Positions 212-45,030 of a DNA stretch of 64,000 nt are shown here, piece by piece. Source of the DNA: Cyanophora paradoxa CCMP329 (taxonomy: Eukaryota > Plantae > Glaucophyta); the NCBI GenBank assembly GCA_004431415.1, contig QPMI01000101.1, forward strand, positions 290,756-354,755, read 5' to 3'. How positions within the stretch are numbered: the first letter of the stretch is position 1; every line of letters starts with the position of its first letter. The notes beneath the pieces were generated by a model. That model saw only the letters and a program-made list of their open reading frames with translations, ran no database searches and was not told where the DNA came from. The position numbers were made by a program, and so were the translations under genes.

Positions 212-1332
212 GGAGGAGGAGGAGGATTCGGACGAGGAAGGGAGCACTAAGGGTGCGCGGCGGGGAGGGTGGGCGACGGGGCGCGCGGGGCCGGCAGGGC
301 GCCTCTGACTGCTCCGCAGCCGACGAGGGGCCCGCGAGCGAAGCGCCGGTGAAGCGGAAGCGCGGGCGGCCGCCGGGCTCGGGCCGGGGCGGGGCGGCCG
401 CCGGGCCGGGGCCGGGGCCGGGGCCGGGGTCGGGGCCGGGGCCGGAGGACCACCTCGGGGACGAGGCCCACGAAGAGGGGCCCGAGGAGGGTGCGTGTCC
501 GTCCCGCCCGCCTCCCCCCGAACCCCCGCGCTCACGCGCCCCGCCCGCCTGGCGCAGACGGCGACGGCAGCTCGCCCCCGCGAAGCGCGGGCGGGGCCGG
601 GGCCGGGGCCGGGGCCGAGGCCGGGGCCGGGTCGGGGGCCGGGGAGGGCGCCCCACGCGGCCCGCGAGCGGGGAGAACGAGTCGCAGCCGGACGGCTCGC
701 CCGACGCGCCGCCGCCTCCCAGGCGGGGCCGGGGCCGCCCCCGCAAGAACCCCCCGGGGCCCGAGCCACGCCGAGGCCAAGGCCCGGCGCGCCTCGGCCG
801 TCTCGGCCGTCAGCGACGAGGCCGCCGCCAACGGTGCGTGCTGGCCGGCGCGCCCCTCGCTCGCCCCTCGCTTCGCCCGCCTCACCGCCGTCCTCGCGCA
901 GGCTCCGGGGAGGGCCCGAGCGACGAGGAGATGGCGGCGGCGGCGCCGCCGAAGCGGGGCCGGGGCCGGCCGCCCAACCCGAAGCCGGCGCCGGGGCGGG
1001 CAGGGTCGCCGGAGGGGAGCGGGGACGAGGGGAGCCTGCAGGGGCCGCTGCCGCTGGTGGAGGCCTCGGGGGCCCTCTACTACGTGCGCCTGCGGCTCCT
1101 CACGGAGGGCTCCTCGGGGCGCGTCCTGCCGTGCCTGGTGACGCCGAGCCGGCCGCTGGAGGAGCAGCTGCTCTCCAAGGCGCGGCGGGCGTTCGGGGTG
1201 GCGGGCCCCGTGCAGGTCGTCTCGCGCTACGGGACCCCCGTGAACCTCGGCGGCGACCTCCTCGCCGACCACGAGCACCAGTTCCTGCCCCACGCCGCCC
1301 CCGAGCGCTTCTGGGACCTCTTCCTCAAGTGA
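1..1332 (+). CDS. AT-hook-containing, acidic, putative chromatin protein (5' part outside the window, spliced)
   Basis: Asp/Glu-rich tract at ~70-240; AT-hook-like motifs KRKRGRPP, RRGRGRPRK and KRGRGRPP; compact C-terminal domain LYYVRLRLL...FWDLFLK; stop TGA at 1330-1332. Confidence 0.65.
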
Positions 1333-1725
1333 CCCCCGCCCCCGCCCCCCGCCCCTTGTAGAGTTCCCCCACGCATGCGTAGCCGTAGCCCTAGATGTCC
1401 GCAGCATTTTCGATTCGCCTCTCTCGCTAGAATGATTAGAGTCGGTACTACTGCTCTTTAGCATTGCGCAGTGTGTATATTCGCGCTCCACTAGGCAAGA
1501 TCTTTTGCGTTCGGTCCCTAACCATTACGGAGATGTACAACGCGCGGCACGGGGTCAAGAAGGCGGGGGGTCGGGCCGGGCCGCCGCCCAGAAGCTAACT
1601 TACAGGTGGGGTGGGGCGGGGCGTCCGGGGCGGGGGGGCAGGGGGAGCGAGCACATGGCTGAAGCGGAAGGAGGCATCAGAGGCGGGGGGCCTTTGGAAG
1701 AAAACCTAATTTAAGCTCAACGCGA

Positions 1726-2738
1726 CTAAGCGGACTGGAGCTGGTCCTGCTGGGCGCTCTGGGCCCGCGCGGCCGTGAGCATCTTCCGCAGCTGCCGGCG
1801 GGGTCAGAGGCGGGGCGGAGCGGCGCGGGAGCGGCGCGGGCGCACATCGGCGACGCGGCTCTCGAGGGCGGCGATGGTCTCGCTGCCGGCCTCCTGGACG
1901 GCCTGGACCTGCTGTTGGAGGAACTCGCACAGGTCTCGCGAGGCCGCCAGCTCCCGCCGCAGCTCCTTGTTCTCCCGCGCGAGCTGCTCCGGGTCGGCCT
2001 CCGCCGCCGCCTCCTCCTCGTCCGCCGCCGGCGCCGCCTCCGCCACCACGGCGTCCGCAGCGATGTCCATCGCCGTCGCCGTCTCCGACTCGGTCGGCGA
2101 GGCGGAGAGGCGGGGCCCGCCTAGCGAGGATGTCCGCCGCTGCGGCCGCCCCGCGCGCAGCGCCGCCTGCAGCTCCGCGTTCACCAGCTTGTGCTGCGCG
2201 CCGAAGCCGCGTGCACGTGAGGCGAGAGCGTTACCGAGCGCGGGTGCGGGGCGGGTCGGCGGAGGCGCACCTGGAGGTCGTTCCAGATCTCCATATACAC
2301 GCGCGAGGAGTCTTGCTGCCGCTCGCGGAGCTCATTCAGCTCCGTCTTGAGGGATTCGGCCTCCTCCCGCGCCGCGGCCGCCTCCGCCCTCGCGTCCCGC
2401 AGTGCGGACCTCAGCTGCTCGACGTCGGCAATGCCGATAGACACGTCTGATCCCAATTCCGAGGCCGGTGCCGACGCTGAGCGTCTGCGTTTTTGCATGG
2501 AGTCGGACAGAAGATAAGACGACTCGCGGGCAGGCGCGTCGCCGAGCGTGTCCAGTTCTTCGTCAGGCGCGTTTTGTTGAGGGCTAGGAGGGTTCAAATC
2601 AAGCTCCGCGACGTGGAGCCGCTTGAAGAGCGGGCTCGCGGTGGTCTGAGTGGTGCCGACGAGCTGGGCCCGGTCCGGGCTGGACGTTCCGAGCTCCAGA
2701 ACCGTTCCAGAACAGTTCAGGTTCTCCAGTCCCGACAT
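1726..2738 (-). CDS. Hypothetical coiled-coil protein (spliced)
   Basis: ATG at 2738 (MSGLENL...); heptad-rich exons (VEQLRSALRDAR...LNELRERQQ; LARENKELRRELAAS); short GT-AG introns; last exon LRKMLTAARAQSAQQDQLQSA, TAG at 1728-1726. Confidence 0.6.
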
Positions 2739-3338
2739 ACTCGAAGGGCTGCTTCTCGTTCGGACTTCCGGACTAGTCGTTCCACGAGACTAAGATCGTA
2801 TCGTTTTCGCCACTGCGATCGCTTTTCGACACTAAGAAAGGTCTTGTAAAGGCTGAGAAAGCTCGAAGTCGATCGTTGTTGCGCTGGCTGAGGGGTACTG
2901 CCCTCTCGCGACTTCGTGCGCCGCCAGCCGCTGAGCGCTTCAACGCCGGCGCCGGCGCCAGCGCTGGATAGCGCCAGCGCCATGCAACTCTTGCGTAGTC
3001 GACGTCGACGTCCGCAGCTAGTATATAATGCACAATAATGCTCCGAGGGTTCTTGCTTTAGATTGGGCGCGGGCGCGAGATCGAGCGTAATGGTAACGAT
3101 CGTACTAACGTATATCGGTACATTCTGAAGTTCGGTTCTTTCCGCAGGTTCGGCACGACTTTTGAACGCTAACACTAACAGCGCTGCAACCCTGGGGCCG
3201 CGGGCGGCAGGCGGATCTAATAACAATATGGAGACCGTTAAACAACCTGGCTGGCCCCTTCGGGCCGGGGCAAATGCGCCCCGAGGCCGTGAGGGTGCAG
3301 GGCAGGCGCGGGGCGCCGGGGCGCCGGGGCGGGGAGCC

Positions 3339-5159
3339 TCAGTGGAAGCCCTTGCAGCGCTCGAGGAGGCGCTCGCGGGCGCGGAGGGTCCGCTCCAGCG
3401 TGGAGGCCCGATCTTCCGCCTCCTCCTTACCCGTCGCCAGCGCCTTGGCCGCCGCCAGCTGCCGCGAGCGCGCGTAAGACAGCGCTCAGGGCGAGGGCGT
3501 GCCTCGGATTCAATTTGATGTCGCGCCTTGGACTCGAGGGAGGCGATCTTCTGCTGGAGCCGCTCCACCTCCGCCTCCTTCGCCTTCAGCTGGCTCTCGG
3601 CGACGGCGTACCCGGGCAGCCGGTGCGCCGCCACCGGGCCCTCCCCCGCCTCGCGGCCCGCCTCGGGCAGGGGCGGCGGGATGGCGATCTGCGGCCGCTG
3701 CAGCGCCGACGCGTCCTTGTCCGCGGCGTCCCGCTCCTCCGACTTGGGGCCCTGGCGGGGCGGGGCGGGGCGGGGTCGGGGAGGCGGGGCGGCGAGCGCC
3801 TGGTGCGGCGCGGCCCGCACCTTGACGGCGTCGCACCAGAAGTCCCCCTCCTCGCCCCGCGAGGCCGCCCCGAGGCTCCGGCCCAGGCACCGCATCAGCC
3901 GCGTCGCGCTCGTCTCCACGGCCGGGGCCGGGGCGGGGGCGTGCGCCGGGGCCGGCTGCGGGCCGGCCGGGGGCGCGTAGTAGGAGGTGGAGTGCTGCTC
4001 GCCGCGGATGTGGCGGATGCGCCCCAGCACGCCGGGCTCCGCGAAGAGCTCGTGCTCGCACCCTGCCGCCCGCTGAGGGGGGCCCAGGGGCGCGCGGCGG
4101 GCCCCCGCACCGGCGCAGTCGACCTTGAGGAGGGCGAGCTGGTCCGGGACGTAGGAGAGGAAGAGGTCCTCCAGCGTCGCCGTCCGCACCCGCTCCACCC
4201 GCCCCAGGTGCGCCCCCGCCACGCTGTCCGGAGGCACCAGGCTCCGCACCGCCACGTCCCGCCCGTCCGACGTCACGCCCTGCGCGTGCGGGGGGCGGGT
4301 GTGAGGGATGGAGGGGAGGGAAGGCGCCCGGGGGTGCGCGGCGCGCCATGTGGAGGGCGATGACGTTCGTGACGCCGTTCGCGCGGATGTTGTGGAGGAG
4401 CAGGGCGTAGCTGAGGGGTACCGGCTCCAGCGCAACCACCTGGTCCGCACCTCAGGAAACGCGCAGAGCGTCGAAGAAGCAAGTGCAGGGGGGGTACGGT
4501 GGCGCGGGGGAACATCTTGGCGGCGGCGAGGGCGAACCAGCCCGTGTTGGCGCCCACGTCGACGACGACGTCCCCCGGGCGCACGTCGACGTGCTGCAGG
4601 GGGGTTCGATGGGGGGCGGGGGCCGAGGGGAAGGAAGCGAGGAGTAGAAACGGGGCGAGGACCTTGAGGCCGTAGTGGTCGCGGGCCATGCGCTGCTCGA
4701 GGGCCCGCACCTGAGCCGCGCGTGAGCTGCCTGCCTCCCGCAGGGGCCAGGGGGGGCGCGCCTGGGCGTCGGCGGCGTGGAGCTCGCGGATCGTGAGGTC
4801 GAAGTCGAGGAGGCGGACGCGGTGGTCCGAGGCCTGGGAGGGCACGGCGACGGGCGCCTCGTCGCTCTCCGCCGGCAGCTGCCGGTACTTGCGCACCGCC
4901 ACGCCCTCCCCGGGGCCGCTGGGCGCCGCCAGCCAGGCGCGCCCCGCCTGCTCGAGGCGCTCGCGGACGCCGCCGGGGAGCGGGAGGGCGCCGCGCTCGA
5001 CGGTGACGTGGTGGGGCCGGCGGGGCGGCCGGCGTCGGCGCGCCCGGCGGGGCGGGGCGCCGGGGGCCTCGTCTTCGGGCGCCCGCCCGCTCAGCATGCG
5101 CTTGATTAGGTCGGGAATGTTCGGCAAGAGCCGCCGGCCCTCGCCCTTCGCCCCGGGCC

Positions 5160-5196
<37 letters not shown>

Positions 5197-6376
5197 CGCC
5201 GGCTCCGCTGGCGGTGCCTTCTGCTGGGTGTCGGCCACCGGCGGCGCCTCCGAAGCCGGCGTCGCCTCCTCCACGCGCACTGCAGCCGGCGCCCCCTCAT
5301 CCACGCCCGCCGCCGCCGCCTTTTCCTCCGGCACTGCTGCTCCTGCCTGCTCCGGCTCCTCCGGCACAGCAGCCGGCGCCTCCTCCGCCGCCGCTGCCGG
5401 CGCCTCCTCCGCCGCCGCTGCCGGCGCCTCCTCCGCCGCCGCTGCCGGCGCCTCCTCCGCCGCAGCTGCCAGCGCCTCCTCCGCCGCAGCTGCCGCTTCC
5501 CCCTCCTCCTCCTTTTGCTCGGCCGCGGGCGGTGCGGGATCCTCGGCGGGCGCTGGCGCCTGGGCCTGCTCCGCCGGCTGCTCCGCCGCAGGGGCCTCGG
5601 CCGGCGCGCCCTCGGCGGGCGGCTCCGCCTCCCCGCCGCCGCGCCCTCCGCGGCGCCCGCCTCGGACTCGCCCGCCGCCTCCGCCGCCGGCACCGCGGTC
5701 GCTCCTTCTTTGGCGACCGGCGCCTCGGCGGCCTGCTCCGGCTGCTCACCCGGCGGCGCCTCGGGGGCCTCTCCGCCCTCCCCCGCGTCGCCCGCCGCGG
5801 CGGCCGCGCCCTCCCCGTCTCCGTCCACGTCCGCGGAGCGCTCTGCCACCGCACGCTCCCTCGGCGCATCGCCGGCTTCTGCGGCGCTAGCCGCCGCCGC
5901 CTCCGGAGCGGCCGCCGGCTCCGAGTCCGATGCCGGTTCTGTCGCGTCTCCCGCGACGGCCGGCTCCGCCTGTGCGCTCCCTGCGCCCGCTTCGCCTGCT
6001 GGTATCTCCCGCGCGTCAAGGACGACCCGCTCCGTGTCCGCGTCGCTTCCGTCCAGCGCGGCGGCGGCAGCGGCCGCCGCCGGTGGCGCCTGCCCCTGGG
6101 CGGCGGCCGCCCCGCTGCCACTGCCGCTGAGGACCGATCCCAGCAGGTCCTTCACCCAGTCCGAGGAGCGCTCCGGCCCCCGGCTGTCGACCGCCGCAGC
6201 TGCCGCCGACAGGCCATCGGGGAAAGCGGGCTCGTCTGCGCGCGCGAGCTGCGCGGCGCGGCGCAGATCAGCTCGCGGCATCCGCGAAGCATCGCGGCGC
6301 TCACCGCTGCGAGGCCCGCGCAGAGGAGCGCGATCTGGAGGAGGACTGCCCAGGACCTAGAGCGACGGCGGAGCAT
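3339..6376 (-). CDS. FkbM-family SAM-dependent methyltransferase with signal peptide and long Ala/Glu-rich stalk
   Basis: Motif I VVVDVGANTGWFAL, then VALEP..SYALLLHNIRANGVTNV and LLKVDC..CEHELF. Spliced N-terminus MLRRRSRSWAVLLQIALLCAGLAA|LARA-DEPAF looks like a signal peptide. C-terminal coiled coil; TGA at 3341-3339. One apparent frameshift near 5635. Confidence 0.8.
5372..5491. repeat. Coding tandem repeat, 24-nt unit x5, encoding AAAAEEAP on the minus strand
   Basis: GCCGGCGCCTCCTCCGCCGCCGCT repeated, with the last copies slightly diverged. Confidence 0.85.
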
Positions 6377-6695
6377 CTGGGGCCGAGTCCGATGCGACGC
6401 CGTATGCCTTGCGCAGCTTGCGATACTTATGAAACTTGTTGAAGGCCTCGATCTCCTTCGCGACGTAGTGCCCGCGCGCCACGAGGTCGGTGATTCTCTT
6501 TGACGGTGCAACATCAGCAGCGGCGAGGGGGGGCGCATTCGCATGCCAAGCGTGCATTCGCACCTGTGGGTCTGTTTCCTGGGCGTTCTTGAGGAACGCG
6601 CGTTTCGCCTTAGAGCGCACGACGTCGAGTCCTTCCGGGTACGAGCGGCCGAGCCAGAGGAGCGTCCGGTAGAGCTCGCGGACCTCGCAGCGCAT
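6357..6695 (-). CDS. LYRM5: LYR-motif protein 5 / electron transfer flavoprotein regulatory factor 1
   Basis: MRCEVRELYRTLLWLGRSYPEGLDVVRSKAKRAFLKNAQETDPQ|RITDLVARGHYVAKEIEAFNKFHKYRKLRKAY matches the ETFRF1 pattern (EV..LY..LL.LGR.YP.G ... KE.EA....KYR...Y). One 66-nt GT-AG intron at 6563-6498. Confidence 0.85.
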   Translation of the reverse strand: MRCEVRELYRTLLWLGRSYPEGLDVVRSKAKRAFLKNAQETDPQVRMHAWHANAPPLAAADVAPSKRITDLVARGHYVAKEIEAFNKFHKYRKLRKAYGVASDSAPDAPPSL

Positions 6696-6841
6696 TAGGA
6701 GCCCCAGCCCCTTGCGCCGCTGAACCTCCGCTACTGTCACAGTGCGCACGAAGCCGGGGTACCGCGCGCGAGGGGCCAGTTCGCGTGCTCGCCGACGACG
6801 CGACGACTGCGCGTATTTGGGAGGGGGTAGCCGCCGCGGAG
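6696..6841. promoter_or_regulatory. Putative bidirectional promoter (LYRM5 / ABCB)
   Basis: Divergent ATGs at 6695 (-) and 6842 (+), 146 bp apart. Confidence 0.55.
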
Positions 6842-9800
6842 ATGCGTTCGATCCACGCCGCCGCCTACGCGCTATCGGCGAAGCACGCGACACCTGTCGC
6901 CGCCGTGCGGCCCAAGCAGCGCACGACGTCGAGTCCGCACGCGCATCGCGTGGCGCTGGGCTCCCTGACGCCATGCACCGGGCCGCTGCGGATCGCACCC
7001 AGCCTTCTCGCGCGGGCGGCGGAGTCACGGCCCAGCACAGCGCCGGAGAGCTACGTATACGCTGGGCTCGCCCGCCGCGGGATTCGCTCGACGGCGCCGG
7101 CTCTTTCGCGCTCGCCACCGGCGGAGAGCGACGAGGAGCGGGCGCGCGAGCAGCGGCAGCTGGAGCGCGAGGAGCGGCCGCTGGGGCAGGTCATCCTCGC
7201 CCTCTTCAAGCGCCTCGGGCGGGTGCCGGCGGAGGGCCCGCTTCTCCCGACCAAGGCCGAGATCCTGCGCCTCTTTCGCATGGCCATCCCCGAGAGCAAG
7301 CGCGCCCGCCCCGCCCCGCCCCGCCCCGCCCCGCGCGGCGCGGCCTGCCGCCTTGACCTTGCGCGCAGGCTGCTCTGCCTCGCCATCGGGGCGCTGGCGT
7401 GCTACTCGGCCTCCGGAATTGCGATGCCGCGCATCACGGGCCAGATCCTCGACGCCGTCTCCAACCACGCGGCGAACGGGCTCGGCCCCCTCCAGAGCGT
7501 GCGCCCTCCTCGCCCAGCTCGCCAGCTAGCTTGCGCCCCGGCGGCCTTTGAACCATCGCTCGCGCGTGCGTGCAGGCGGGCACGGCGATGCTGGGCGTCT
7601 CCCTCGTGGGCGTACTCTCCTACAGCACCCGCGAGCTCTCCCTCGGCCTCGCCTCGGCGCGCCCCCGGCACCGCCGGCCCCGCCCTGCCCTCCCCCAGCT
7701 TCTAAGAGCCCTGCGAGCTTCTTGCCTCCTGCGCCGCCTCGCGGAGAGTGTGAGGGGTGGCGGCAGGAGCGGATCGCGGCGCGCTTCCGCAAGTCGATCT
7801 TCAACGCGCTGCTGGCGAAGGAGACGCTCTTCTTCGACCGCAACCGCGCGGGGGAGCTCACCAACCGCCTCTCCGCCGACGTCATGGTCGTCACCAACTC
7901 CATGTGCCAGGCCCGCGCCCCCGCCGTCGGCTCCCCCTCGAGCCGCGCCCCCCTCCCGCTCACACCGCCCCCGTCTTCCGGCCCGCAGAACATCCCGTAC
8001 GCGCTGCAGAACGTGATCTCGCTGTGTGGCGGGGCCTACATGCTCTTCTCGCTCTCGCCGCCCCTGGCGGCTTTCGCGCTGGGCCTCTACTCGTCGCTCT
8101 CGCTCGCGGCGGCCGTCTACGGGCGCGTGGCCAAGCGCCTCTCGAAGCAGCAGCTGGACGCCCTCGCCCGCGCCACCGCCATCGCCGAGGAGCGCATCGC
8201 CAACGTCCGCCTCGTGCGTCGCCCCCTCCCCCCTCCCGCTCCCCTCCAGTGCCGCCGCCGGGTTGAGAGGCGGCGCGCTGCGGGTGCAGGTGCGGCTGTT
8301 CGTGCGGGAGGCGCAGGAGCGGGAGCGGTACGCCGCGTACGTGGACCGCGTCTACGCCGCCGGCTCCGCCATGGCCGTCGCCTCCGCCTGCTACTGGGGC
8401 TTCATCACCGGCATCGAGTACGTCGCCAACCTCGCGGTCCGCCCACGTACCCCCCTCGCCCGTTCCCGGGTCGCTTCGATCCCCTTCCTCGCGCAGGTGC
8501 TGTGGGGAGGGGGGTACTTCACGACGACGGGGGCCCTGGCGCTCTCGATCGGGGAGCTCACGTCTGTCGCCATGTACACCGTCAACACGGGGTACGGTGC
8601 GGGAGCCCCCTCCGCCCCCCCCTCCCCCGCCCCCCTCTGCCCCTCCGACCGCGTGCGCGGGGAAGCGATGGGGGGGCTCTCGGGGACGTACGGTGAGATC
8701 ATGCGGGCGGTGGGCGCCTCGACGCGCATCTTCGAGATCCTCCAGCTCGACGCCCCGCCCGGTGCGAGCGAGGCCCCTTCCCCCGCCTTCAACCAGAGCT
8801 CAACGTCGCTCTTGCTGCTCGCCCCTCCTGCCGCTTCCCTATCTTCTTTCGGGCCCCCGTCTTCTTCTCCCTTGACTCGCTCCTCTTGTGCAGCGCCCGC
8901 GGTCGTCCAGTCGCCGGCCGCCGCCCGCGTCCAGGCCTCCACCGCCTCCGCCCGCCGCATCGCCTTCGAGGGGGTACACCCTCCCCGACCTCTCCTCTCC
9001 CTCCCCTCGTCTCTTAGCGCTCGGCAGGTCCACTTCTCGTACCCGAACCGGCGCCCCTCGGGCCCGCGGTGCCCCGACGACGCGTCGCGCCCCAGCGCCA
9101 GCCCCTCCCCTGCCCCCTCGCCCCCCTCCTCTTCCACCGCCGCCGCCGGCTCGCCCGCCCCTGGGGAGGAGGAGGCGGTGCTGGAGGACTTCAACCTCTC
9201 GCTGAACCCCGGCGAGTCGGTCGCCCTCGTGGGGCCCAGGTCCGCCCCACCCCGCCCCGCCGGGGCCGCCCCCGCGCAAAGCGGCGAGGGGGCGGGCAGC
9301 GGGAGCGGGAAGAGCACGGTGGTGCTGCTGCTGGCGCGGCTGTACGACCCGACGGCGGGGCGCATCACGATGGACGGGGCCGACGTCCGCGAGCTCGACC
9401 CCGCCTGGCTCCGCGAGCAGGTCCGCCCCGCCCGCCCGCCTCGCGCCCGGCCAGCCCGCGCTCCCCCAGGCGCTAGAGCAGGCCCCGCCTCTCTCCGCGA
9501 GGGCGCGCGTGGACGGGGTGGGCGGCGCAGGTGGGGGTGGTGACGCAGGAGCCGGTGCTCTTCGACGACACCATCCGGGAGAACATCCGCTACGGCCGCC
9601 CCGGCGCCTCCGACGCCGACGTCGAGCACGCCGCCCGCCAGGTCCCCCGCACCCCCTCTTCCTCCCCGCCCCTCCGACGCCGAAGGGCGCACGCAGGCGA
9701 ACGCCGCCGGCTTCATCGAAGCGATGCCGGCGGGGTACGACACCGTCGTGGGGGCGCGCGGGGCGAACCTCTCCGCCGGCCAGAAGCAGCGGTGCGCGCC

Positions 9801-10596
9801 GCTCTCCACGCCCCCGGCCGGCCCTGGAGCTCTGCATCCCCTCCCATCCACCCCGCCGTCTCGATGCTGCCCTTCTCGGCCTCCTCCGCGCCACCCCCTC
9901 GCCCCCTCCGCCGCCTCGGTTGGACGGGGCGGGGCGGGGCGGCTGCAGGGTGGCGATCGCGCGGGCGCTGCTGAAGGACGCCCCCGTCCTCGTCCTCGAC
10001 GAGGTGCTGCGCCCCGGGCCCGCCCCGGCCCCGCCCGGCGCGGCGCTGCGCCTGACGGGGGGCGGCGGGGCAGCCGACGTCGGCGCTGGACGGGGAGAGC
10101 GAGATGGCCGTCGAGGACGCCCTCCTCAAGCTCATGCGCGGTCCGCCCCGCCCCGCCCCGCCGCCCCCCCCGCCCCCCCCCCCTCAAGCATCTTCTCCCC
10201 AGGGCGGACGACGCTGATGATCGCTCACCGCCTGCACACCATCCAGCGCCTCGACCGCACCGTCGTCGTCCGCGTGCGCCGCCCCGCCCACGCCCCCCCC
10301 CCGCCACGCCTCACTTTGTAGCCCCCTCCAAGCCCGCCTCCCCTCGCTCGCCCTCGCCGGCCCCGCGACGGCCGCCCCTTCCTTTAGGCCTGCACACGCG
10401 CCCGTCCGTCCTCACTCGCCCCGCGCAGGACGGGCGGGTGGTGGAGGAGGGCCGGTTCGGTGCGCGCCGTCCCTCGCGCGCCCCCTCCGTCTCGCCGCTC
10501 GCCAGGCGCTGACGGGGGCCCCCGGGCGCAGAGGAGCTGATGGCGGACGAGCACTCGGCGCTCCGCTGCCTCGTCAACCGGGCCGCCCAGATCTAG
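6842..10596 (+). CDS. Mitochondrial-type ABCB half-transporter (ABCB10/MDL1-like), multi-exon
   Basis: Basic, Ala-rich presequence; TMD motifs [51 protein letters not shown]; Walker A VGP|SGSGKST; Q-loop [19 protein letters not shown]; signature LSAGQKQR; Walker B VLVLDE; H-loop IAHRL; TAG at 10594-10596. Confidence 0.9.
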
Positions 10597-11025
10597 GCCC
10601 AGAGCCGCCCGACCAGATCCAGGAGGCCCGCCGCCTCGGCTTCCGTTTAGCTTGATCATCCCCTCGAGTAGCTCGAGCGGCCGGCGGCCGGCGGCAGGCC
10701 TAGGCGCGACAGTACTCTCATCGCGCCGCAGCCCGGATTCAGGGGCCTCGAAGGAAGCCGGCATGCGCAGGCCTAGGAGTCCGCGCCGCCAGAGCCCGGG
10801 CGGCTTACAACATTACTGCTTGGACCAACATGCATATGCTTAATAAGAGACAAATATACGTACAGATCTAGAAAAAGATGGCGGCGCCAGCACGAGAGGG
10901 GGCGGGCGCCGCGGGATTCTGCCTTCCTGCCACGGGGCTCGGGGGGCCCGAACTCAGGTAACGAAGCGTCACAACCGCAGAACACGCGGCCTGCGGTCGC
11001 TCCTGGCCACGGCGCGGCCGGGGGC

Positions 11026-12347
11026 CTAGAAGCGGAGGGGCCGGAGGGCGCGCTCGCGGGCGGGCACGCCGACCGCCGACGGGGAGGCGTCCCCCTCGCC
11101 GTACCCCTCCTCCTCGAGCCCCGCCTTGCGGTGCGAGCGCGGCTGCTGCTTCCGCTCCGAGGCGCGCCGCTGCGCCGCGAGGGGCGTGGCGGGGCGCTCC
11201 TCCTGGGGCGAGGCGGCAGCGGCCGTGGCCGGCTCCTCCATGCTCGCCGCCTCGAAGGCGCGCAGCAGCGTCGGCCGCCCCGCGCTCTGCGCCGCCGGCA
11301 TCGTCGAGTAGTGCGAGGGCGCGAGCTGCGACTTGCGCTTGCGCTGCCGGCTCGAGCCGGTCGTGTGCGCCGCCCGCGGCCGCTGCGCCGAGCGCGTCGC
11401 GCTCCGCGGCGTGCTCGGCGCGTCGCTCTCCGACGGCGGCGGCGTCGCCGACGTCGCGCCCCCGTCCGAGGGGCCCGTCCCCGCGCCCCGCTCCGGCGCC
11501 GACTGCGTCGCCGCCTCCTCCCGGTACCCGTCTGCAGCGCGGCGTCAGCCCGCGCAGCCGGGAGGGCTCATCGGAGCCAACGGACGCACCGAAGCCCTTG
11601 AGTAAGGTCATGAGTCTGCGGGGGGCGGGCGGGCGCAGCGTCAGGCGCGAGGACAGTTGCATCGCGGGGCGGGGCGGGGCCGCCGCACTTGGCCCGCATG
11701 TTCTCGCGCTCGAGGTGCGCCTGCTCCAGCTCTCTCTGCACGCGCGCCAGCTCCGACTTGTGCTGCGCCTTGAGGCGCGCCACCACCTCGTGCGCGTGCC
11801 GCTTCTCTGTGCACGCGCGCTCGAACGGTGCCAGCGGCCGGGCGTTGCGGGCGGACGCGCTTGGCAGTCGCCGCACGCACCCTGGTTGAGGTCCTTCTCG
11901 ACCAGCACAAGCGCCATTTCGAGCTTGTCCTTTGAGCGGCTCAGCTCCGCCGTGCGCGCCGTCTCGCGGTCGAGCCGCTGCCGCAGCTCCTCCGAAGCTC
12001 GCCGCAGGCTCTGGATCTCCGACTGGTACCGCTCCGAGATGCTTGCGAGCTTCGTGCTGAGGTCGTCTACCGTCTTGGCGAGCCTGCGGGGCGGGCGTTG
12101 GCAGCTTGCGCGGGGGCTGGGGGAGCGGGGGCCGCAGGGATTACAGATAGAAGTTTTCGGCACTCAGCGCCTCGCTCGCTGTCGATCGCGCGGACAGGCC
12201 GCCACCGCTGCGAGGGCTCCACTCTTCGCGCGGCGAGGACTGGCGTTGCAGCTCATCGTCAGCGGCGGATGGTTCTGCTTTCGTTGGCGTCGGTCGATCG
12301 TTCTTGCTTCGAGGACAAAGACACGCGAACAAGCGGGCAGAGTCCAT
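11026..12347 (-). CDS. Hypothetical coiled-coil protein with low-complexity C-terminus
   Basis: ATG at 12347 (MDSARLFACLC); spliced heptad exons LAKTVDDLSTKL...EKDLNQ and HEVVARLKAQHKSELARVQRELEQ; stop at 11026. Confidence 0.55.
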
Positions 12348-12470
12348 GGCTTCACGCCCGCCGGCGCTGCTCTCGCTTCGACTCACCGCACCGGCCTAGA
12401 TCAGCTAGCTCCGTCGCTGGGCTGGCCGCCTGGCGCCGGCTGGCGGGAGTCGGGGGGTACGCGCACTCAG

Positions 12471-13674
12471 ATGCTTGCGCGGTGTGCGGCGGCCGTAGCA
12501 AGGAGGACGCATCTCGGCAGCGTGGCGCGGCGCGGCGCGCAACTGTACCAGCTCAAAGCTTCGCCGACAGCAAGCACGATGTCGGACGAGGCCGCCGCTC
12601 GGTGCGCGGTCGTCCGGCAAGCCCGGGCACACGCGGAGAGACGGGCTAACAGCGGTACACGCGCAGCTTCAAAATCTACACGAGGACGGGCGACAAGGGT
12701 CCGTCCCGCCTCGCGGCGCTTCCGTGCCGGGTGCCCGCGAGCTGAGCGCGTGCCGCGCGGTGCAGGCTCGTCGAGCTTGTACACGGGGGAGCGGAGAGAG
12801 AAGGACGACCTCGTGTTCGAAGCGCTCGGCGCCGTTGACGAGCTTAATTCCGCCATCGGGTAAACCCCGGTCCCTGCCGGATTGCGCCCCTCTCACGCGC
12901 CTGCGCGTTCCGCAGCGTGGCGCACGAATTCTGCGAAGAAGCGGCGAACGGCATCCACAAGAAGCTTGAGCAGGCAGCCGCTCGCGCACTCCCCTTGGCC
13001 GCGGCGCGGCGCTGCCGCCTGACGCGCCCGGCGCAGCTGCAGTCGGCGCTCCTCGACGTCGGCTCTGCAGTGGCGACGCCGAAATCGTCCGCCGCGGAGC
13101 ACAAGCTCGGTGCGCCCCTCTCCGCCCGCCCACGGCTCGCCCCCTCCTCGGCCCCCGCCCCGCTCAGAGGGGACGGGCCCGGCGCTGCGGCAGCGCGCGT
13201 GCAGTTCGACGAGGGGTGGATCGGGCAGCTGGAGGCGTGGATCGACGAGGCGGACGCGCAGCTGCCCCCCCTCCGCAACTTCATCCTCCCCGTGCGCCCA
13301 GTGGAAAGCGAGCGAGGGGCGGCGGGGGCTGACCCCGGGCGGGCCGCGCAGTCCGGGGGCAAGTCGAGCGCGTTCCTGCACGTGGCGCGGACGGGGTGCC
13401 GGCGGGCGGAGCGGCAGGTGGTGCCCCTAGTGCGCGCCGGCGAGGTCGACGACGTCGTCCTCCGCTTCCTCAACCGGTCCCTCCCGCTCGCCGCGGCCCC
13501 GGGCACGGCCTCTTCCCCGCCCATCCCACCCTTACCCTCTCGAGCAGGCTCAGCGACTACCTCTTCACGGCGGCGCGCCTGGCGGCCCTCAAGGAGGGCA
13601 AGACCGAGGTCGTCTACCAGAAGGGCCGCACCGGCGCCGGCTCCTCCGCCGCCCCCGCCGCCGCGACCAGCTGA
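12471..13674 (+). CDS. MMAB: PduO-type ATP:cob(I)alamin adenosyltransferase, mitochondrial precursor
   Basis: Spliced motifs [10 protein letters not shown]|[56 protein letters not shown]|[30 protein letters not shown]; Arg-rich presequence from ATG 12471. Confidence 0.93.
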
Positions 13675-13799
13675 TGTATTCGTATTCGCCTTCTTGTTAT
13701 TTCGAGATTGAATACAGATACGGACGACAATTTCTTTAGCTGTGCTTTTTTCGCTGACAGTTGATTAGAGGAGGGAGGAGCCTGGGGGAAGGGCGCGGC

Positions 13800-16436
13800 C
13801 TAGTGGCGGGGGCTGATGGCGATGCGGACGTAGGGGGCGGGCCAGCACATGGTCGTGGCCCTGCGAGCGAAGTCGGCGGGAGGGGGTACGCGTCAGCGCG
13901 GCAGAGGGAGGGGAGGGGGGGCACGTGCACGCACTCGAAGCGGACGTCGGGGTGGCCCTCTTCAAGGCCCACGCGGAACCGCTGGAGGATGGCCACCAGG
14001 GACAGCGCCACCTCCACCTAGGACGGGGGATGAGGCGGAAGGGGTACGGGGTATTCCTTTAATCATCGCGGCCTACGTTCGCGAAGTTGCTCCCGATGCA
14101 GTGGCGGGGCCCCGCGCCGAAGGGGATGTACGCGTGCTGGGCCTCAGGCGGACCGTCCCGGAACCGCTCCGGATCGAACTCTGCGTGCGCCCCCTCCAGA
14201 AGTCAACGGGGAAGAGCCGGGGAGAGGGGGCCGGGCACCCTCGGGCCGCTCCCAGAAGTGGGGGTGCCGGTGCACGAGGAAGGTCGAGATCAGAAGCCCG
14301 CTGCCAGCCGGGATCGGCACACCCCCGATCTCGTCTGCGGCCCCCCTGATCATGAACCGCCGGGGGGGCTACGGGGCGTAGGGGGGGGGGGGGGGGGGGG
14401 TTACCGTCCTCGACGGCGTCGCGCATGAACACCCAGATGGTCGGAAAAAGCCTCATGACCTCCATCATAAATAGGCGCATGTACCCCAGCCGCGGCAGGT
14501 CCTCCACCGTCGCCTCCCGCCCCTGCAGAAGGAGCATCTCAGGGGGTACGGGATAAGGAAGAAGGGTACGGGAGCAAGCACCCCCAGGACGTCGTCGATC
14601 TCGGCGACGGCGCGCTCGAGGACGTGCGGGTTGCTCGCGAGGGCGTACAGCGCCCACGTCAGCGTCGTCGCGCTCGTCTCGTACCCCCCGCCGACCTGCC
14701 GGCCACGGACCTAAGTGGATGCGGAGGCGAGGGGGGATATATATATACAGGGAGAGGGTTGGAATACCATGGTGATGACCTCGTCACGGAGCTGCTTGCG
14801 TGTGAGCGCCCCGCCAGTCTCCTGCGGCGAAAGTTAAAAAGAAGGGGGGTGAAGAGGGGGGTACGGGCCGCACGGGATCGCGGGCGGCGATGAGGAGGTC
14901 GAGAAAGTCGCGCTCCTTCCCCTCCCCCTCCCTATGGGGGTACGGGTCGGCCTGGGTAGACTGAGATTGAGGGGTGTTGGGCCGCGCGCACCCCGTGGCG
15001 TCCCGAGCGGCGAGGCGGGCGTCGACGATGCCGTACACAAATCTGCGGGGCGGGTTACGGGGTCCGGAACGGAGGTGCGGGGGGTACGGTGCGCCTGTCG
15101 ATGGCGGCGAGGGTGTCGTTGAAGCGGCGGTTACGGGGGGTAGGGACCCAGGTGGGCGGCTGCAGCGGGTTCGTGACAAGGTCGCCCGCGTACGCGAACG
15201 CAAACGCGAGCAAATCGTGTATCCCGCTCGCGTCCGTCCTGTGGGGGTAGCCAATCTTTAGAATGGGAGGCAGCGGATGTCTTTCTCTGGGGAGACGGGG
15301 GTACGGGGCGCGCCTGATGTCGACGTCGAGCATGAGGCGGGCGATCACGGACATCGTCAGCCGCAGCATCTCCGTCTTCGCATCCAGCACCGTCGTACCC
15401 CTGCCGCGCGGGTCGAATGCGGGGGGCGCTGGAGCCGCAGAAGAGAGACGCGGCGCACCCGGCGGCCGTGACGCGGGCCTGCCACTCGTCGAGGGACTTG
15501 TGTGCCTCGCGCGTGACCACCTCAGCGAGATCGGACACCTGGGGGGTACATGAGTTAGACGGAAGGCGGGGAAAGAGGGGGCTGCTCGTGGGGGGGAGGG
15601 CGCGCCCTCTTCTGAGCGAAGACAGGCTGGATAAGGCGGCGGCCTGGCGCACGAGCGCGGGCGTCAGGTGCAGGCGCGGGCGACGGGGCTTCACGCGGGG
15701 GCAGCGCGCACTGAAGGGCCAGTTCTCGGATTCGGCGGCGGTGGCGAGGCCGCGGCCGAGGACGAGGGAGAGCTCCTTGGTGCTGTTCTTCTTCACGTAG
15801 TTCGCCTTGCGGTCGACCAGCACGTGCTTGATGTACTCCGGGTGCGCCAGCTGCGCACCCCCTCACCCCTCAGAGCGCGCACAGGTCAGGATCGATATGT
15901 ATATATCTACGGGGCGCGCACGGTGAAGAAGGGCGGCTTGGTGGGGACGGAGGTGCGGAAGATGTCCCCGTTGACGGCCCACGCGTCCAGAAACGTGGGG
16001 AGCAGCCCGCGGGTCTTGAACGAGACGAGGCTCCCAAGCACTGGCCACTCCGAGGGCGCCGCGTACCAGTCGCCCGCTTTCAGCGCCGGCCCCCGCGGCG
16101 GGAGCGCCACGCGACGAGGCTCGGGGATCTGCGCCCGCGGGGGCGAACTCTAAACTCGCGCTCCCGGGCTGCCTCGGCGTGGCGCCGGCCGCGCATGCTC
16201 ACCTTCGGCTTCGAGCTCTCCGCGGGCCGCGCGCGCTCCGTCGTGTCCGCGCCTGCATCCGCCCGCGGCTTGCCCGCATGGAGCGCGGCCGGCCGGGGCC
16301 TGTGCGAGCTAAGACGTGCGCTCGCAGGAAGCGCGTCGCCGAGCCTGGCGCCGGCGAACTCGCCCCGCCACGCGCCGGCCACGTGCGCGCGCCTGCGTTC
16401 GCCGATGGGCGCGGCAGCAACTGATACGAACGCCAT
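13800..16436 (-). CDS. Cytochrome P450 with plastid-type transit peptide, multi-exon
   Basis: I-helix [11 protein letters not shown]-helix EVMRLFP, PERF, heme-binding [14 protein letters not shown]; [21 protein letters not shown]; starts [10 protein letters not shown]; TAG at 13802-13800. Confidence 0.92.
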
Positions 16437-38275: not shown

Positions 38276-40130
38276 GCTTGTCCCCTGCCCGACGCGCGAA
38301 GAGACGCCGGGGCGTAAGAAAGAGCGGTAAATTCGAAGGCGAGTGCTCAGAAAACGATGTAAATTATATAATGTCGTCTAGGCCTGCGCATGTGTATGCC
38401 TGCAGGCTATAGCTAGTCCAGATGATCACGCCCCAACGTCAACTATCCAAAATAACGCAAACCGGTAGCGGACGACACCAGGCCGCCTGTAGCTTTATAT
38501 ATATAGAGAGCGGGAGCCCGGCGCGGGGCAGGCCATGGCCAGCCTGCAGGGCGGCAAGGCCTGGAAAGCGGCCAGAAATAGCCCGAAAGAGAGGGGGACT
38601 TGAAGCTAGGGGGTGGAGAGGATGCGACGGTGCTCGCGATCACCTGCACGAACGGGAGAGAGAGCCGGGTCGATGTTCGCGTCCTCCTCGAGCTCGCGCC
38701 CACGCTCAAGCCGGCGGCGGCGGCTGCTGCTGCCGCCGCCGCCGCCTGCGCAGCCTCGCCGCACACGCACGCAGGCCCAGCGTACACCGCCCCCGACTCT
38801 GCGCTCGCAGCGTGATCATGAGCGCTGGTCACGGCGGGGCGCGGCCGCGCGCGCGGGGGAACTCTAGATCAAAAGGGCGGAGGCATGGGCTCGCCCCAGT
38901 CGGCGAGCTCGATAATCAACTGGCGGCCGATCCACGGGCTCCCTGCCTCCGCCTTCAGCTTGTACAGCCTGCGAGCCCTCAGCTCATTATGAAGCTTTGC
39001 ATTCGCTCATGATCATGATCAAGAGCATTCAATTCAGCTGCAGTTGCCAAGCCCGCTAGAAATCCGGGACGGGCGGCGGACCTTTGCTTCACGACGGCAT
39101 GGTAGTGCACGTGGGGGCCGCTCTTGTCGCGCTCGGGCGACCAGGGAAGCGGAGCGAAGGGCTGGAAGGAGCTCTGCACGGTGCTCTGGAGGGAGACGAA
39201 CTGGCGGCGGAGGAGCGAGAACTCCGCCGTGCACGTGCCCAGATCAGGGTCGAGAGCTCCGGGGTTCGGCGGCCGGTCGAACGGCGACATTCGCGCGTGC
39301 GCGGCGACGTCCGGCGCTGCCGCACGCGCGATCGACCGAACCTCAGCCAGTTCACGCACTGACCGATATCACGATCGAATCAGATCGATACATATCGGCC
39401 GCAAACTGCACATTCGATCGCAGATGTACCTCATTCGCATGATGGAGACCGAGGCGCCCGCGGCCCGGGCGTTGCAACTGCAAGTTCCGCATGCATATGC
39501 GGACGGCATACTATGATACGTCCAAAGCTACTCTACAAGTTGAACTGAAGCTCGTGCTGCAGCCTGCAGGCTGCAGGCTCAAGCTGCACTGCGCCGTGAC
39601 TGCGGGGAGTCCGAGAGTCCGATGCTCACCGCGGCCGCCGGCCGCGGGCACCGCCGCACCGGTCTGCCGCACTGCGGCACTGCGCACGTGCTACTACGGT
39701 GCTAGGGATTAGCCTACTTGGCCTAGGCTTGTATGGCTGGGCTAAAGCTTATTCCGGTAACACCCCGTGCGGGCCGAGTAAGGGTAAAGTGAGCAGCGAG
39801 CCGCCGGGCCGCCGAGCCCCAGGCCCCCACTGGCCCCCCAGCGCTAGCTGCAGCCTGCAGTGACTCAGTGACTCTCGAAGTCCGACGGTCTCGCGATCTC
39901 GCAGCATACAGTATATACTCACTGAGTCAGTCACTGAGTGACTGGCATAGCGGCGCCGGGCGCTAGCGCTGTCGAAGATCTTACGTTTACAGTACCCACT
40001 ACGGTATACGGTATACCCCGGAGGGTAAGCCCGGTTGGCATTGTTTGTTCAACTCGGCAATGCTTTTAAATTTGCTAGCGCGGCGCCGCTAGCGCTAGTA
40101 CCGCTAGCGCGACGTCGACAGTTACTAGTA

Positions 40131-40392
40131 CCGTAAAACACAATATTAATGCGCGCATAATATTAATGCGCCCCCAAATTAATGCGTTTTTTACCGTCAA
40201 CACGCATTAATTTGGGGGCGCATTAATAACAGAACGCTAAGAAACTGGAGATAGTAGGACGTACTCAGTACCCCCCTCATGCAGGCGAGAAAGCGTAAAA
40301 ACGCATTAATTTGGGGGCGCATTATTAGCCATACGAGGGGTCCGGGTCCAAAAACGCATTAATATTGAGCGCATTAATATTGTGTTTTAAGG
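40131..40392. mobile_element. Tc1/mariner-pogo-like MITE, 262 bp
   Basis: TIR CCGTAAAACACAATATTAATGCGC / GCGCATTAATATTGTGTTTTAAGG (1 mismatch); TA on both flanks; internal inverted copies of TAATGCGCCCCCAAATTAATGCGT. Confidence 0.85.
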
Positions 40393-41149
40393 TATAGTGT
40401 TTTTTTTGTGTATTGAGGCGTTATTAAAAAATTGCAGTGTTCTTATAATTAATTAAATTGTCGAATTCGCAAAAATTGGAATTGCCGAGTCTATAATTTT
40501 AAATTGCTAAGGCCAGACGTTCATCACTCTACATTTCAAGTTGTAACTTGTAATAGGCCTGATGCTTGACCCCCCCCGGCTTCAAGCCAAGCCAAGCCAA
40601 ATTTTGGCCTTCCGGAGTCAAGCCAAGCCAAGCACCCCGTTAGTGAATTCGCACACACCGAGACAATACGGCTAATGATAGAACTGAGGAGTCCGTAAAG
40701 TGTCAAGTCGAAAGATGAGCCTACTGGTTACGCCGGGTAGGGAACCTATCAGCCATCGGACAGGGTGGAGCTAGTCAAGGAGACGTAAACTAAAGCAAAG
40801 CTAACCCAGAGCAGAGAGCTACTACCTATACATCTAGCCTAGCTTAGGACTAGGCTACCGAGAGGACTACCCAGGGTCTACGAGAGGGAGGTAAATTAAA
40901 ACACTACTACTGCTAGTGCTGCCTGCCTAGGGACCGTCGGGACGTCCGGCCAAGCCAAGCACCCGAGCCGGCTGGCTCAAATGCTTGGCCCCTCGGCTAG
41001 GTCAAATATTTGTCAAATGCTTGAGGGGGGGGTACCCCATGTACGCCCCTCTTCCCCTCTAGATCTAGCTATAGATCTTCCCTAAGGCGCGCGCTAGCTA
41101 GCTACGCACGTACGCGTACGTATACGCCGAGCGTCGCCTGCCCTGCCGC

Positions 41150-42097
41150 GTGCTGAGCGGATTCGCCATCTGTCGGCGCGATCGCGAACAGCCCGTGCTG
41201 CGTGTTGCAATTGAAATGGCTGTCGATCGCGATGCTCGATGTCGCGCTGATGTTTTTGAACACTGTCTTACAAGCGAACTGCCGGCCGTGCTTCTCCTTG
41301 TTGACTCAGTGAGCAGGCACATCGCTGCTTTAATTTCTTCCCGTGCATGCGCATGCGCAGCTTCCCCTGGATGATCTTAAGCTTGTCGCCCTGCCAGACC
41401 CACGAAGTGAGAATGTGGATCTGCCGCTTAAGCCAGAGGTGGCTGTCACAGCGGAACGGCGTTGTATGGCGCCATATACGCTGAAGGAAAAAAGTCCTCT
41501 ATGTAAATCGTTAACTTAAATCGCGTGTTCGCGTTACTGCAAAACTGGGCGAACTCGACTTGAACAATTACGTACCCCCCTTTTGGACTTGGTCGCGGCG
41601 CCGCGCGGCGCAACGAGCTCGCTCATTCTACAAAATCCAGCGCCACCATACAAAACTACGGTAGAGCAGCTGATTGGTAGGCCAATGGCGCGCCGGCGCG
41701 CGATTCGGTCTGGCCGTTTTCGATTTGCTCTGGAGCGAAGTTCGAACGACTTTTTTCCCAACGGCACCCGACTTCACCCCCCCGGTTAATTTTTCAAGTT
41801 GAATATGTTTCAAATATATATTAAGCTCTAATAGACTTGACTTGAAAAATTAAACTTGAGCGTATAGGGCGCCATACAACGCCGTTCCGCTGTGTGTCCA
41901 TCGGCTCGAAGTCGTCCGCGTCCGTGCGCGGCCCTTGCGCTGCTGCAGGCGCCCCTGGCGCAGCTGCAGCTGCAGGCGCGGCGCATCGCTGGAGCCGGCG
42001 ATGGGCTGCGCGGGGGCACGGAATGAGATGTTGCCGGACGCGTCCTTGCCGATGACTGACTGCGTGGCTTTAATTTGCCCTTCTCCTTCGGCGGCAT
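41150..42097 (-). pseudogene. Decayed ORF inside the hAT element, possibly a transposase N-terminus with a BED-finger-like segment
   Basis: MPPKEKGK start at 42097; frame DFEPMD-SHLWLKRQIH...WVWQG is restored when 41447-41894 is removed; downstream C...CKTVF...SHF..QH pattern with frameshifts. Confidence 0.4.
41447..41894. mobile_element. CACTA/CMC-like non-autonomous element with CACAG termini, 448 bp, nested in the hAT element
   Basis: ~36-bp TIR CACAGCGGAACGGCGTTGTATGGCGCC(A/C)TATACGCT; 3-bp TSD TGT (41444-41446, 41895-41897). Confidence 0.85.
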
Positions 42098-43046
42098 TGC
42101 TGCTGGCTGCCTGGCTGAGCCTGCTTCGCTGTGCCTAAGTATGGCCCTTCCCCCCCCTGCCCCCCCCCCCCATAATATTTGCAAGTATCTTTAAGCACGG
42201 CTTTCTGCCTCAAATGCTTGGCGCTAGAGGTCAAGCCAAGTGCTTGAGGCAAATGCTTGACCCCAAGCAGCAGGCCTAACTTGTAAGTTGTAATCATTGA
42301 ATATGGTGGTCTACTATATAGCTACTACTAGTCTACTAGTAACTTAAAAAGCCGCCTACTAGCCTAGTAGGCTAAGAAACTCTCGAGTCTATAGCTAGCA
42401 GTGCCTAGCACTATAGCTAGCCTACTGGATCTCTAGATCTTCCCCCGGGCGGCGGGCCGGGCCCGAATGCCATGATATCGATGCCGCGGCATTGCCGCCC
42501 CATGCAGCCTGGCAGGCCCCCAGCAACATTAATTTAATATTGCCGAGTCGTGAATTTTCAAAATTAATTTAATAATTGCATGCACGTGCACGCGCGCGTA
42601 CGTATATACTTCGTTTACGTACTTCAAGGCCGCCCCCGATGAGCTCGTAATCCGAGAAATAATAACAATGTGCGCTCCGGCCCCTTAGCTTCCGAAGCTG
42701 CCTTGTCGTGCATGCGCAGGTACAGTATACGTAGTACGTATACGTAGGGGCCGGTAGTACCGGTACGGACCGTACGGCCAATCATTGAATTGCAAGTTGC
42801 CAGGCATTGCGGGCAAGCGCTCGCCGCTCGCCGCTTGGCGCCGCTTGCAATTGGCAAGTTGCAACTTGCAATTCAATGATTGCACTGGATCATCAGTCGA
42901 CATCCGACATGGTACGTCCGAGTCTGCAATGACTCTGCATAAAAGACTGCATTGACCGTCGGACTCTGCAACTTGGATGGGGCCCCGGCCCTGGCTGAGC
43001 CACTGTCAGCTGCAGCCTGGCAGAGCCAGTGAGCCTGCGAGCCGCG

Positions 43047-43475
43047 CAGTGTTGTCGTTATAACGTTAACGGAAATCGGGTCGTTATAGCGTGACCGTTA
43101 TAACGCGTTATAACGGATAATGACGCGTTACTTTCGTCATTTTGAATATTTTATTATATTAAATATTCATTAAATATATTCCATTTCCTGCACGGGTACT
43201 TCCGCTCGTACGTGACCGCGGTCTGCCAGTGAACGCCGGCGCCGGCGAGCTTCCTAAGCCTTCCTTGCATGTGCAAACATCTTCTTAGCTGTTCTATCAT
43301 AGTTTCATATCAGAAATGCGTTAAAATGCTACGAAATACGCGAGTTAAGGGGGGGTGAAGCTCGTTAATAACGACTGTCCGTCATATTGACTGGGGTCGT
43401 TATAGCGCTAGCGCGTTATTAACGTGACGTTATAACGTCATCCGCTATAACGGTGACGTTATAACGACAACACTG
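43047..43475. mobile_element. hAT-type MITE, 429 bp
   Basis: Perfect 20-bp TIR CAGTGTTGTCGTTATAACGT; 8-bp TSD GAGCCGCG (43039-43046, 43476-43483); subterminal GTTATAAC palindromes. Confidence 0.9.
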
Positions 43476-43632
43476 GAGCCGCGCCTCAGCGGCGCCTGCA
43501 TGCGCAGGCTGCAGACTGCAGCCTGCAGTGCCGGCGACTCGGCGGCGAGTCGGCGGCGACTGTGCCGCTGCACTAGTACTGCCGCTCAGCAGCCGCTGCA
43601 GCCTGCATGCGCAGCTGGGCCGCCTACTAGTA

Positions 43633-43842
43633 CTGGAGAACCAGAAATATTTAGTGGGCTGCATATTTATAGTACTAAAAAGTTTTGGGCGATCTACTAA
43701 ATATTTCCCGCCTGCCAAAGTCCCGTCTCCGCCATACAAAAGCCCTGCGAAGACCGACCTACTAAAGATTTACCATCTGCTAAAGTGGCAGTTTTGGCGA
43801 AGTACTAATTATTTTCCTGTACTAAATTAACCAGTTCTACAG
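43633..43842. mobile_element. Degenerate TA-flanked MITE, 210 bp
   Basis: Imperfect TIR CTGGAGAAC / GTTCTACAG, TA on both flanks, AT-rich interior with repeated TACTAAA. Confidence 0.55.
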
Positions 43843-44108
43843 TAGTTAAAAAACGTTACTTTACTACTAAAGTTAGTACGCGGCGGCAGTGCCGCCGCGC
43901 ACTGCGGCACTGCCGCGGCACTTACCCCGGCGCCTACTACCGGTAGGCGGCGGTAGCTATAGTATGCATATGCCGATATATATCGCCGAGTCGATGGTAT
44001 GAATCATATGATCACGATATATCAATGCATATGCATTTGCAAAATCCCGTTATTTCAATTTGATCAAATTTACTTGATTTCACCGAGTCAGGTTCCGCCT
44101 ACGTACTA

Positions 44109-44970: not shown

Positions 44971-45030
44971 ACTGCTAGCCAAACAGCTACTAGGGCTAGT
45001 CCAGATGTCGTTGGTCGTGTCTGAAATGCA
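44971..45030. repeat. 60-bp inverted dispersed copy of 16910-16969
   Basis: 59/60 identity to the reverse complement of TGCATTTCAGACACGACCAACGACATCTGGACTAGCCCTAGCAGCTGTTTGGCTAGCAGT. Confidence 0.9.

Follow-up and report, generated by a model that had tools for sequence, protein, structure and literature searches.

A candidate bicistronic nuclear locus in the glaucophyte Cyanophora paradoxa: LYRM5 overlaps the start of an FkbM-type gene

On the minus strand of a 64,000-nt stretch of DNA from Cyanophora paradoxa CCMP329 (contig QPMI01000101.1; hereafter the window), the gene for LYRM5/ETFRF1 runs into the start of a larger FkbM-type gene (ORF2) which is read in another frame, and continuous spliced RNA leads from the first gene into the second. 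The two genes are likely to share one mRNA, and a bicistronic mRNA translated by leaky scanning is on balance the best reading of the locus. In this model a single transcript of about 3.1 kb would start near position 6750, lose nine introns and end near 3100. Some scanning ribosomes would start at AUG 6695 to produce the 90-aa mitochondrial ETF regulator LYRM5, while others would bypass this codon, encounter no other AUG over the next 250 nt and initiate at 6376, yielding an 851-aa FkbM-type methyltransferase that would enter the secretory pathway. The features of the locus are collected in Table 1.

Table 1. Features of the LYRM5-ORF2 unit in window coordinates, with the rotifer-type LYRM5 pairs (locus:positions) for comparison
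Feature	Position	Strand	Evidence or remark
5' leader, at least 54 nt, without AUG	6696..6749	-	RNA contigs reach 6749 in X15 and 6740 in X17
ORF1 LYRM5/ETFRF1 exon 1, 44 codons, start context CTA-ATG-C	6564..6695	-	ORF and exon alignment
Intron 1, 66 nt, GT-AG, phase 0, branch-like CTGAT at -20	6498..6563	-	absent from RNA contigs
ORF1 exon 2, 46 codons and TAG (6359-6357)	6357..6497	-	alignment; uninterrupted in RNA contigs
20-nt overlap, ORF2 AUG 6376 in the +1 frame within the LYRM5 tail	6357..6376	-	no indel in DNA contig
ORF2 exon 1, with basic n-region and first part of the putative hydrophobic signal/anchor	6305..6376	-	local sequence analysis
Intron 2, 56 nt, GT-AG, branch-like CTGAT at -23	6249..6304	-	absent from RNA contigs
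ORF2 exon 2, end of putative signal (ARA|D) and Ala/Glu/Pro-rich stalk	4762..6248	-	DNA and two RNA runs
FkbM-type exons	4710-4663, 4593-4498, 4439-4347, 4279-4111, 4062-3821 (span 3821..4710)	-	PF05050
Last ORF2 exons, coiled-coil-like end	3751-3527, 3458-3339 (span 3339..3751)	-	reads and frame check
3' UTR, AT-richer, TGTA at 3122	3098..3338	-	RNA contig; putative poly(A)-signal role
Model-only intron of tig00000403_g351.t1	6357..6426	-	unsupported: RNA contigs keep 6305-6497 unbroken
Brachionus plicatilis LYRM5-FAD synthase	L001:3001-4473		AUG -25 nt from LYRM5 stop end
B. calyciflorus LYRM5-FAD synthase	L010:1501-2972		AUG -19 nt from LYRM5 stop end
Three related contigs, LYRM5-FAD synthase	L011:8-1524, L012:1512-3296, L013:2-1307		AUG -22, +10, -19

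ORF1 comprises 90 codons (6695-6357) interrupted by one intron. Its identification as LYRM5 in the first-pass annotation, together with the ATG and stop positions given there and the intron, is borne out: the named reference ETFRF1 aligns with exon 1 at 59% and with exon 2 at 43% identity, and among the 187 matches listed the best named ones are LYRM5. Near-invariant residues of the family are retained, including the LYR domain, Y, G-x-x-x-P-x-G, RG and the C-terminal YR..Y, the last of which is found in exon 2 together with a variable 14-aa tail. The Cyanophora copy differs from other LYRM5/ETFRF1 proteins in having no internal Met and in that its tail overprints ORF2. The queries of these searches were single exons or genomic references reading through in-frame introns; a word-index search returned no close LYRM5 relatives, and look-ups in PDB and Atlas gave nothing useful. 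Folding of the LYRM5 coding pieces is no better than that of shuffles (z +1.4, +1.9).

The ATG of ORF2 lies 20 nt inside the 3' end of LYRM5 in a different frame, as had been claimed, and the two ORFs are colinear and closely spaced, each with its own stop, which is one of the features by which green-algal bicistrons are recognised. After correction of the bases described below, ORF2 is an open frame of 851 aa ending at a TGA (3341-3339). Its N-terminus consists of a basic n-region and a hydrophobic stretch; an Ala/Glu/Pro stalk and an FkbM domain follow, and the protein ends in a coiled-coil-like part. Strong hydrophobicity is confined to residues 10-26 (KD17 2.41). AUG 6376 is needed for this signal-like element, as the annotation had stated, because the next in-frame Met is residue 409. 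The label “secreted” for the methyltransferase fits the signal-like N-terminus but goes further than a prediction allows, since judged from sequence the stretch could equally well be a signal peptide or a membrane anchor.

The FkbM assignment comes from a PF05050 match with an E-value of 1e-8 and a score of 36 bits, above the cut-off of 22.7, obtained in a Pfam scan of the public model of the locus (P0001). The FkbM exons carry the motifs VDVGANTG, ALEP and KVDCAGCE, and the SAM-binding motif D-x-G-A-N-x-G is found at residue 548. The FkbM consensus also includes K-x-D-x-E-G-x-E, the ORF2 counterpart of which is KVDCAGCE, with Ala in place of the first Glu. Together, exons 4710-4663, 4593-4498, 4439-4347 and 4279-4111 add up to 406 nt, which equals the unlisted span of the RNA contig. 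A search for ORF2 orthologues among proteins near the query length found the Cyanophora model alone and thus offered no glaucophyte synteny comparison. GC-AG ends are found in three of the nine introns of the LYRM5-ORF2 unit (4761-4711, 4346-4280 and 3526-3459), which is a high share.

The read evidence was obtained by comparing one DNA run and three RNA-like runs with window positions 3000-7300. Two of the latter, X15 and X17, are presumed to be RNA, and their contigs lack exactly the introns. Against the window, the DNA contig (5434-7300) shows no substitutions and a single indel, at 5630. As this is far from the overlap of LYRM5 and ORF2, the overlap is no assembly error, and an indel creating it, the circumstance that the first-pass annotation had wanted checked in reads, is ruled out. 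Elsewhere the assembly misses four single bases in G/C runs (after 5012, 5021, 5048 and 5630), on which the DNA and both RNA runs agree. At one of them the public model inserts a false intron that masks the gap, and at the other three about 12 codons are mistranslated.

X15 and X17 each contain one spliced contig (1195 and 1186 nt, respectively), listed over 5434-6248 and 6305-6497. The unlisted 186 nt of X15 and 177 nt of X17 fit the bin depths when placed at 6564-6749 and 6564-6740, with agreement to within 0.1 in five of five bins for X15 and four of five for X17, and the depths at 6312-6743 cannot accommodate a second contig. Because the placed segments reproduce the bin depths, the spliced RNA can be regarded as unbroken from the LYRM5 leader into ORF2. 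In both runs this joint contig takes in the leader, crosses the junctions of the two introns and extends 816 nt into ORF2 exon 2, and it stops at 5434, in the same repeat where the DNA contig stops. The leader ends follow from the length of each contig and the bin depths, and a contig end does not equal a mapped transcription start.

A contig spanning two genes is not the same as a single transcript, and rare variants drop out of contigs. The joint contig therefore does not prove one mRNA, as short-read contigs also join overlapping transcripts of the same strand. An alternative that we regard as possible but doubtful is a pair of overlapping mRNAs, in which the LYRM5 message would end in the 5' part of ORF2 and the ORF2 message would start inside LYRM5 exon 2, from a promoter within LYRM5 coding or intron DNA; such overlaps are merged in short-read contigs. 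Against it, X15 has no contig retaining intron 2, and read depth is alike in both parts. In the two RNA runs, depth, a poor measure, is 33.9 and 24.6 for the joint contig, 30.9/32.1 and 25.5/22.5 for ORF2-only contigs and 19.2 and 11.4 for the ABC gene. The similarity between joint and ORF2-only contigs weakly favours one mRNA, but by hand arithmetic two mRNAs could give the same depths if LYRM5 stood at about 0.55-0.7 of ORF2. The shallow run X19, which covers the 3' part of ORF2 only and not LYRM5, likewise speaks weakly against two mRNAs.

The sequence following LYRM5 bears on the same question. Seven neighbouring gene ends have a GC content of 0.60-0.64 with dips to 0.33-0.47, and in six of the seven (window 1332-13800; background 0.25) a TGTA follows within 300 nt, one of these matches abutting the stop codon. 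Downstream of LYRM5, by contrast, GC is 0.77 and no TGTA is found within 300 nt, the nearest being 3.2 kb away. The TGTA at 3122 is the sole one on the minus strand between 7624 and 2299 and precedes the end of the ORF2 contig by about 22 nt. The missing AT-rich or TGTA-bearing zone after LYRM5 argues against two mRNAs, although it is suggestive only, because the motif was picked post hoc and LYRM5 is followed by coding DNA. TGTA is a candidate UGUA-type poly(A) element resembling the green-algal UGUAA; a poly(A) consensus for Cyanophora was not found in the literature. As a separate observation on base composition, a stretch of about 6 kb at window positions 39800-45900 is low in GC (51-54%), gene-poor and rich in short palindromes and repeated blocks, and probably consists of transposon remnants.

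One point against a bicistron is that a stop codon 5' of eight introns might trigger nonsense-mediated decay. The earlier argument that there is no intergenic room for a promoter or poly(A) site carries little weight. The contigs of LYRM5 and the divergent ABC transporter start 13-22 nt apart, so promoters here must for the most part occupy transcribed DNA, and a gap between genes is not a prerequisite for one; this also favours two mRNAs, as does the C. paradoxa genome at large, with its dense genes, short introns and many overlapping UTRs, annotated with AUGUSTUS models (Price et al. 2019, PMC6704402). The interval 6740-6769 appears to be a very compact bidirectional promoter between LYRM5 and the ABC transporter, the latter having its first ATG at 6842 and a mitochondrial-like N-terminus. 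Taken with the unbroken contig in two runs, the absence of a terminator-like zone after LYRM5 and the anatomy shared with green-algal bicistrons, a single mRNA for both ORFs stands as likely though unproven.

How ORF2 would be translated from this mRNA depends on the AUGs ahead of it. In the spliced message AUG 6695 is the only one 5' of 6376; the 54-nt leader has none, and neither does the 250-nt interval that separates the starts. The four remaining ATGs (6557, 6544, 6538 and 6514) all lie within intron 1, which is spliced out in the contigs of both runs. The first-pass annotation was thus correct in its count, but chance gives the same result in 8-39% of null sequences. The probability of zero AUGs is 0.09 from base composition, 0.39 from a dinucleotide shuffle, 0.32 from a codon shuffle, 0.08 in windows of equal GC and 0.085 in back-translated homologues, so that the absence of AUGs is only mildly beyond chance and not significant. 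The AUG-free signal stems mostly from the missing internal Met of LYRM5; 75 of 85 homologue cores have one and 10 have none. Three of the intronic ATGs (6544, 6538 and 6514) are in the frame of ORF2 with no stop before 6376, and retention of intron 1 would permit an N-terminally extended ORF2 as well as an in-frame 22-aa insert in LYRM5.

The start contexts are CTA-ATG-C for ORF1 and CAG-ATG-C for ORF2, with C at -3 and +4 common to both. The ORF1 context had been described as unlike that of neighbouring genes, and it does differ from the GAG, GCG, CAG and ACG found at likely neighbouring starts, but one neighbour has AGT-ATG-T and ORF2 shares the C at both positions. This contrast rests on about 10 unverified starts, and no Kozak consensus for Cyanophora was found in the literature. 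What speaks for leaky scanning is an anatomy that matches the nuclear bicistrons of green algae, in which this mechanism has been shown by mutation (Gallaher 2021, PMC7896298; Duenas 2025, PMC11892635). For LYRM5 and ORF2 the mechanism is inferred from this analogy. Likenesses include an ORF1 of about 270 nt, a short leader and no AUG before a larger, unrelated ORF2; differences are the glaucophyte host, the 20-nt overlap against listed spacings of zero or more, the FkbM partner, and evidence that consists of sequence and short-read contigs.

A single mRNA might also yield ORF2 by termination-reinitiation, with ribosomes stepping back about 17 nt from the LYRM5 stop to AUG 6376. It is the shortness of this step that keeps reinitiation conceivable, and five rotifer-type loci likewise keep the ORF2 AUG at -25 to +10 nt from the LYRM5 stop. 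Coupled reinitiation on overlapping cellular ORFs has been reported (PMC3923131). We consider it unlikely here, as no calicivirus-type UGGGA motif of the kind that defines a TURBS lies upstream of the stop/start site, the tail has no Asp-rich repeat and there is no Rfam match, while an AUG-free ORF1 suits scanning and the green-algal tests favour it.

The top match of the LYRM5 searches is the locus itself, present in EukProt as Cyanophora paradoxa tig00000403_g351.t1 (P0001), an 889-aa model in which both proteins are fused. Its junction from 6427 to 6356 removes the YR..Y tail and stop codon of LYRM5 together with ATG 6376, and in an alignment of 31 LYRM5 sequences the residues lost are at least 90% conserved. 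This loss, the unbroken RNA over 6305-6497 and the lack of a branch-like motif at the model acceptor rule out the fusion model as the major form. Besides the model intron, two further routes to a single fusion protein can be envisaged, namely splicing of donor 6563 to the AG that immediately precedes ATG 6376, and +1 frameshifting. The model junction and the skipping junction both use GT-AG and preserve the frame, and the frame of ORF2 stays open along LYRM5, but this last feature is at chance level (P 0.56) and is no signal. The branch-like motif that marks seven of the nine real introns is missing at both acceptors, and a matrix protein followed by a signal peptide would be an implausible arrangement, which renders fusion very improbable; minor fused isoforms may be lost from contigs. 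Even less credible is the resolution of a joint precursor by spliced-leader trans-splicing at the AG before ATG 6376. A CAG stands immediately 5' of this AUG and a short leader could be trimmed off contigs as a tip, but the site lacks the branch-like motif, CAG-ATG is also an ordinary start context in the window (25158), that bin holds no additional contig and we know of no spliced leader in Cyanophora.

NCBI models fusing LYRM5 to a neighbour exist in other lineages, namely in the rotifers Brachionus plicatilis and B. calyciflorus (FAD synthase) and in Myrmecia bisecta (SET). In B. plicatilis the fusion runs across the LYRM5 stop; in the DNA, an unbroken FAD synthase frame of 375 aa opens at an AUG lying 25 nt ahead of the end of this stop. 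The N-terminal sequence of FAD synthase is conserved across the rotifer-type loci. The pair is a candidate for a conserved, functionally linked bicistron; no paper on it was found. Rotifer-type LYRM5 copies contain one or two internal AUGs each, and the mechanism may therefore differ from that in Cyanophora. Since LYRM5 overlaps its partner in spite of these AUGs, gene overlap does not require clean leaky scanning, a further point for two mRNAs. In M. bisecta, KAK9829856.1 fuses LYRM5 to a SET-domain protein (L004:2001-3384); LYRM5 ends there in its own stop at 2334, and about 70 nt further on ATG 2407 opens the SET frame with a transit-peptide-like start. An AT-rich contig (L005:173-964) contains LYRM5, a gap of about 120 nt, a small SET-like gene and then a Med28-like gene, and probably just reflects a compact genome. 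No close same-strand partner of LYRM5 was found in Acanthamoeba, Capsaspora, a beetle or two environmental loci. As the loci were chosen by the length of the homologue and these five have no partner, the pairs speak for recurrence, not frequency.

Several known systems precede the Cyanophora pair, and its presentation as a non-green novelty was overstated. Polycistronic nuclear transcripts have been reported in Cyanidiophyceae (PMC9812998), which are also non-green Archaeplastida but red algae with streamlined genomes, and whose mechanism may differ. The human MIEF1 mRNA has an upstream ORF of the LYR family (PF05347; PMC4383229), again a small LYR ORF 5' of a larger one, although of another LYR subfamily and with a mitochondrial partner. 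In human MOCS2, ORFs overlapping in different frames are translated from one nuclear mRNA by leaky scanning (PMC9607355); MOCS2A and MOCS2B are subunits of one enzyme with an overlap of 77 nt, whereas the Cyanophora products look unrelated and are predicted for different compartments. LYR proteins are common in green-algal bicistrons, five LYR subfamilies being found on such transcripts (PMC7896298), and five ORF pairs in Auxenochlorella have zero gap (Duenas 2025, PMC11892635). Nor is the pairing of a mitochondrial with a secretory-type protein new, as LYRM9 (Cre08.g363695) precedes a sugar-phosphate transporter annotated to Golgi/endosome (PMC11892635 supplement). A literature search covering few subscription papers found no report of glaucophyte nuclear bicistrons or of a bicistronic LYRM5. 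What is new is the glaucophyte lineage, the kind being already known in green and red algae.

The work corrects a public gene model and recovers a missing LYRM5 and an 851-aa predicted secretory-pathway protein. It also offers a cheap screen for fused models whose “intron” removes a conserved C-terminus and stop codon. We tentatively suggest, without expecting it to be the likelier outcome, that leaky-scanning bicistrons are regular in glaucophytes, hidden as fused models, and that LYRM5 is repeatedly the upstream cistron across supergroups. If this is true, leaky-scanning bicistrons would occur in all three lineages of Archaeplastida, LYRM5 would have acquired varying partners (in Cyanophora an FkbM protein, in rotifers FAD synthase and in Myrmecia a SET protein), and the rotifer mRNA would couple an ETF flavin regulator to FAD synthesis. 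Within the literature that could be searched, no earlier protein-coding nuclear bicistron is on record for a glaucophyte, so that the Cyanophora pair would be the first; it bears on whether this mode of expression is old in Archaeplastida or arose repeatedly in compact genomes.
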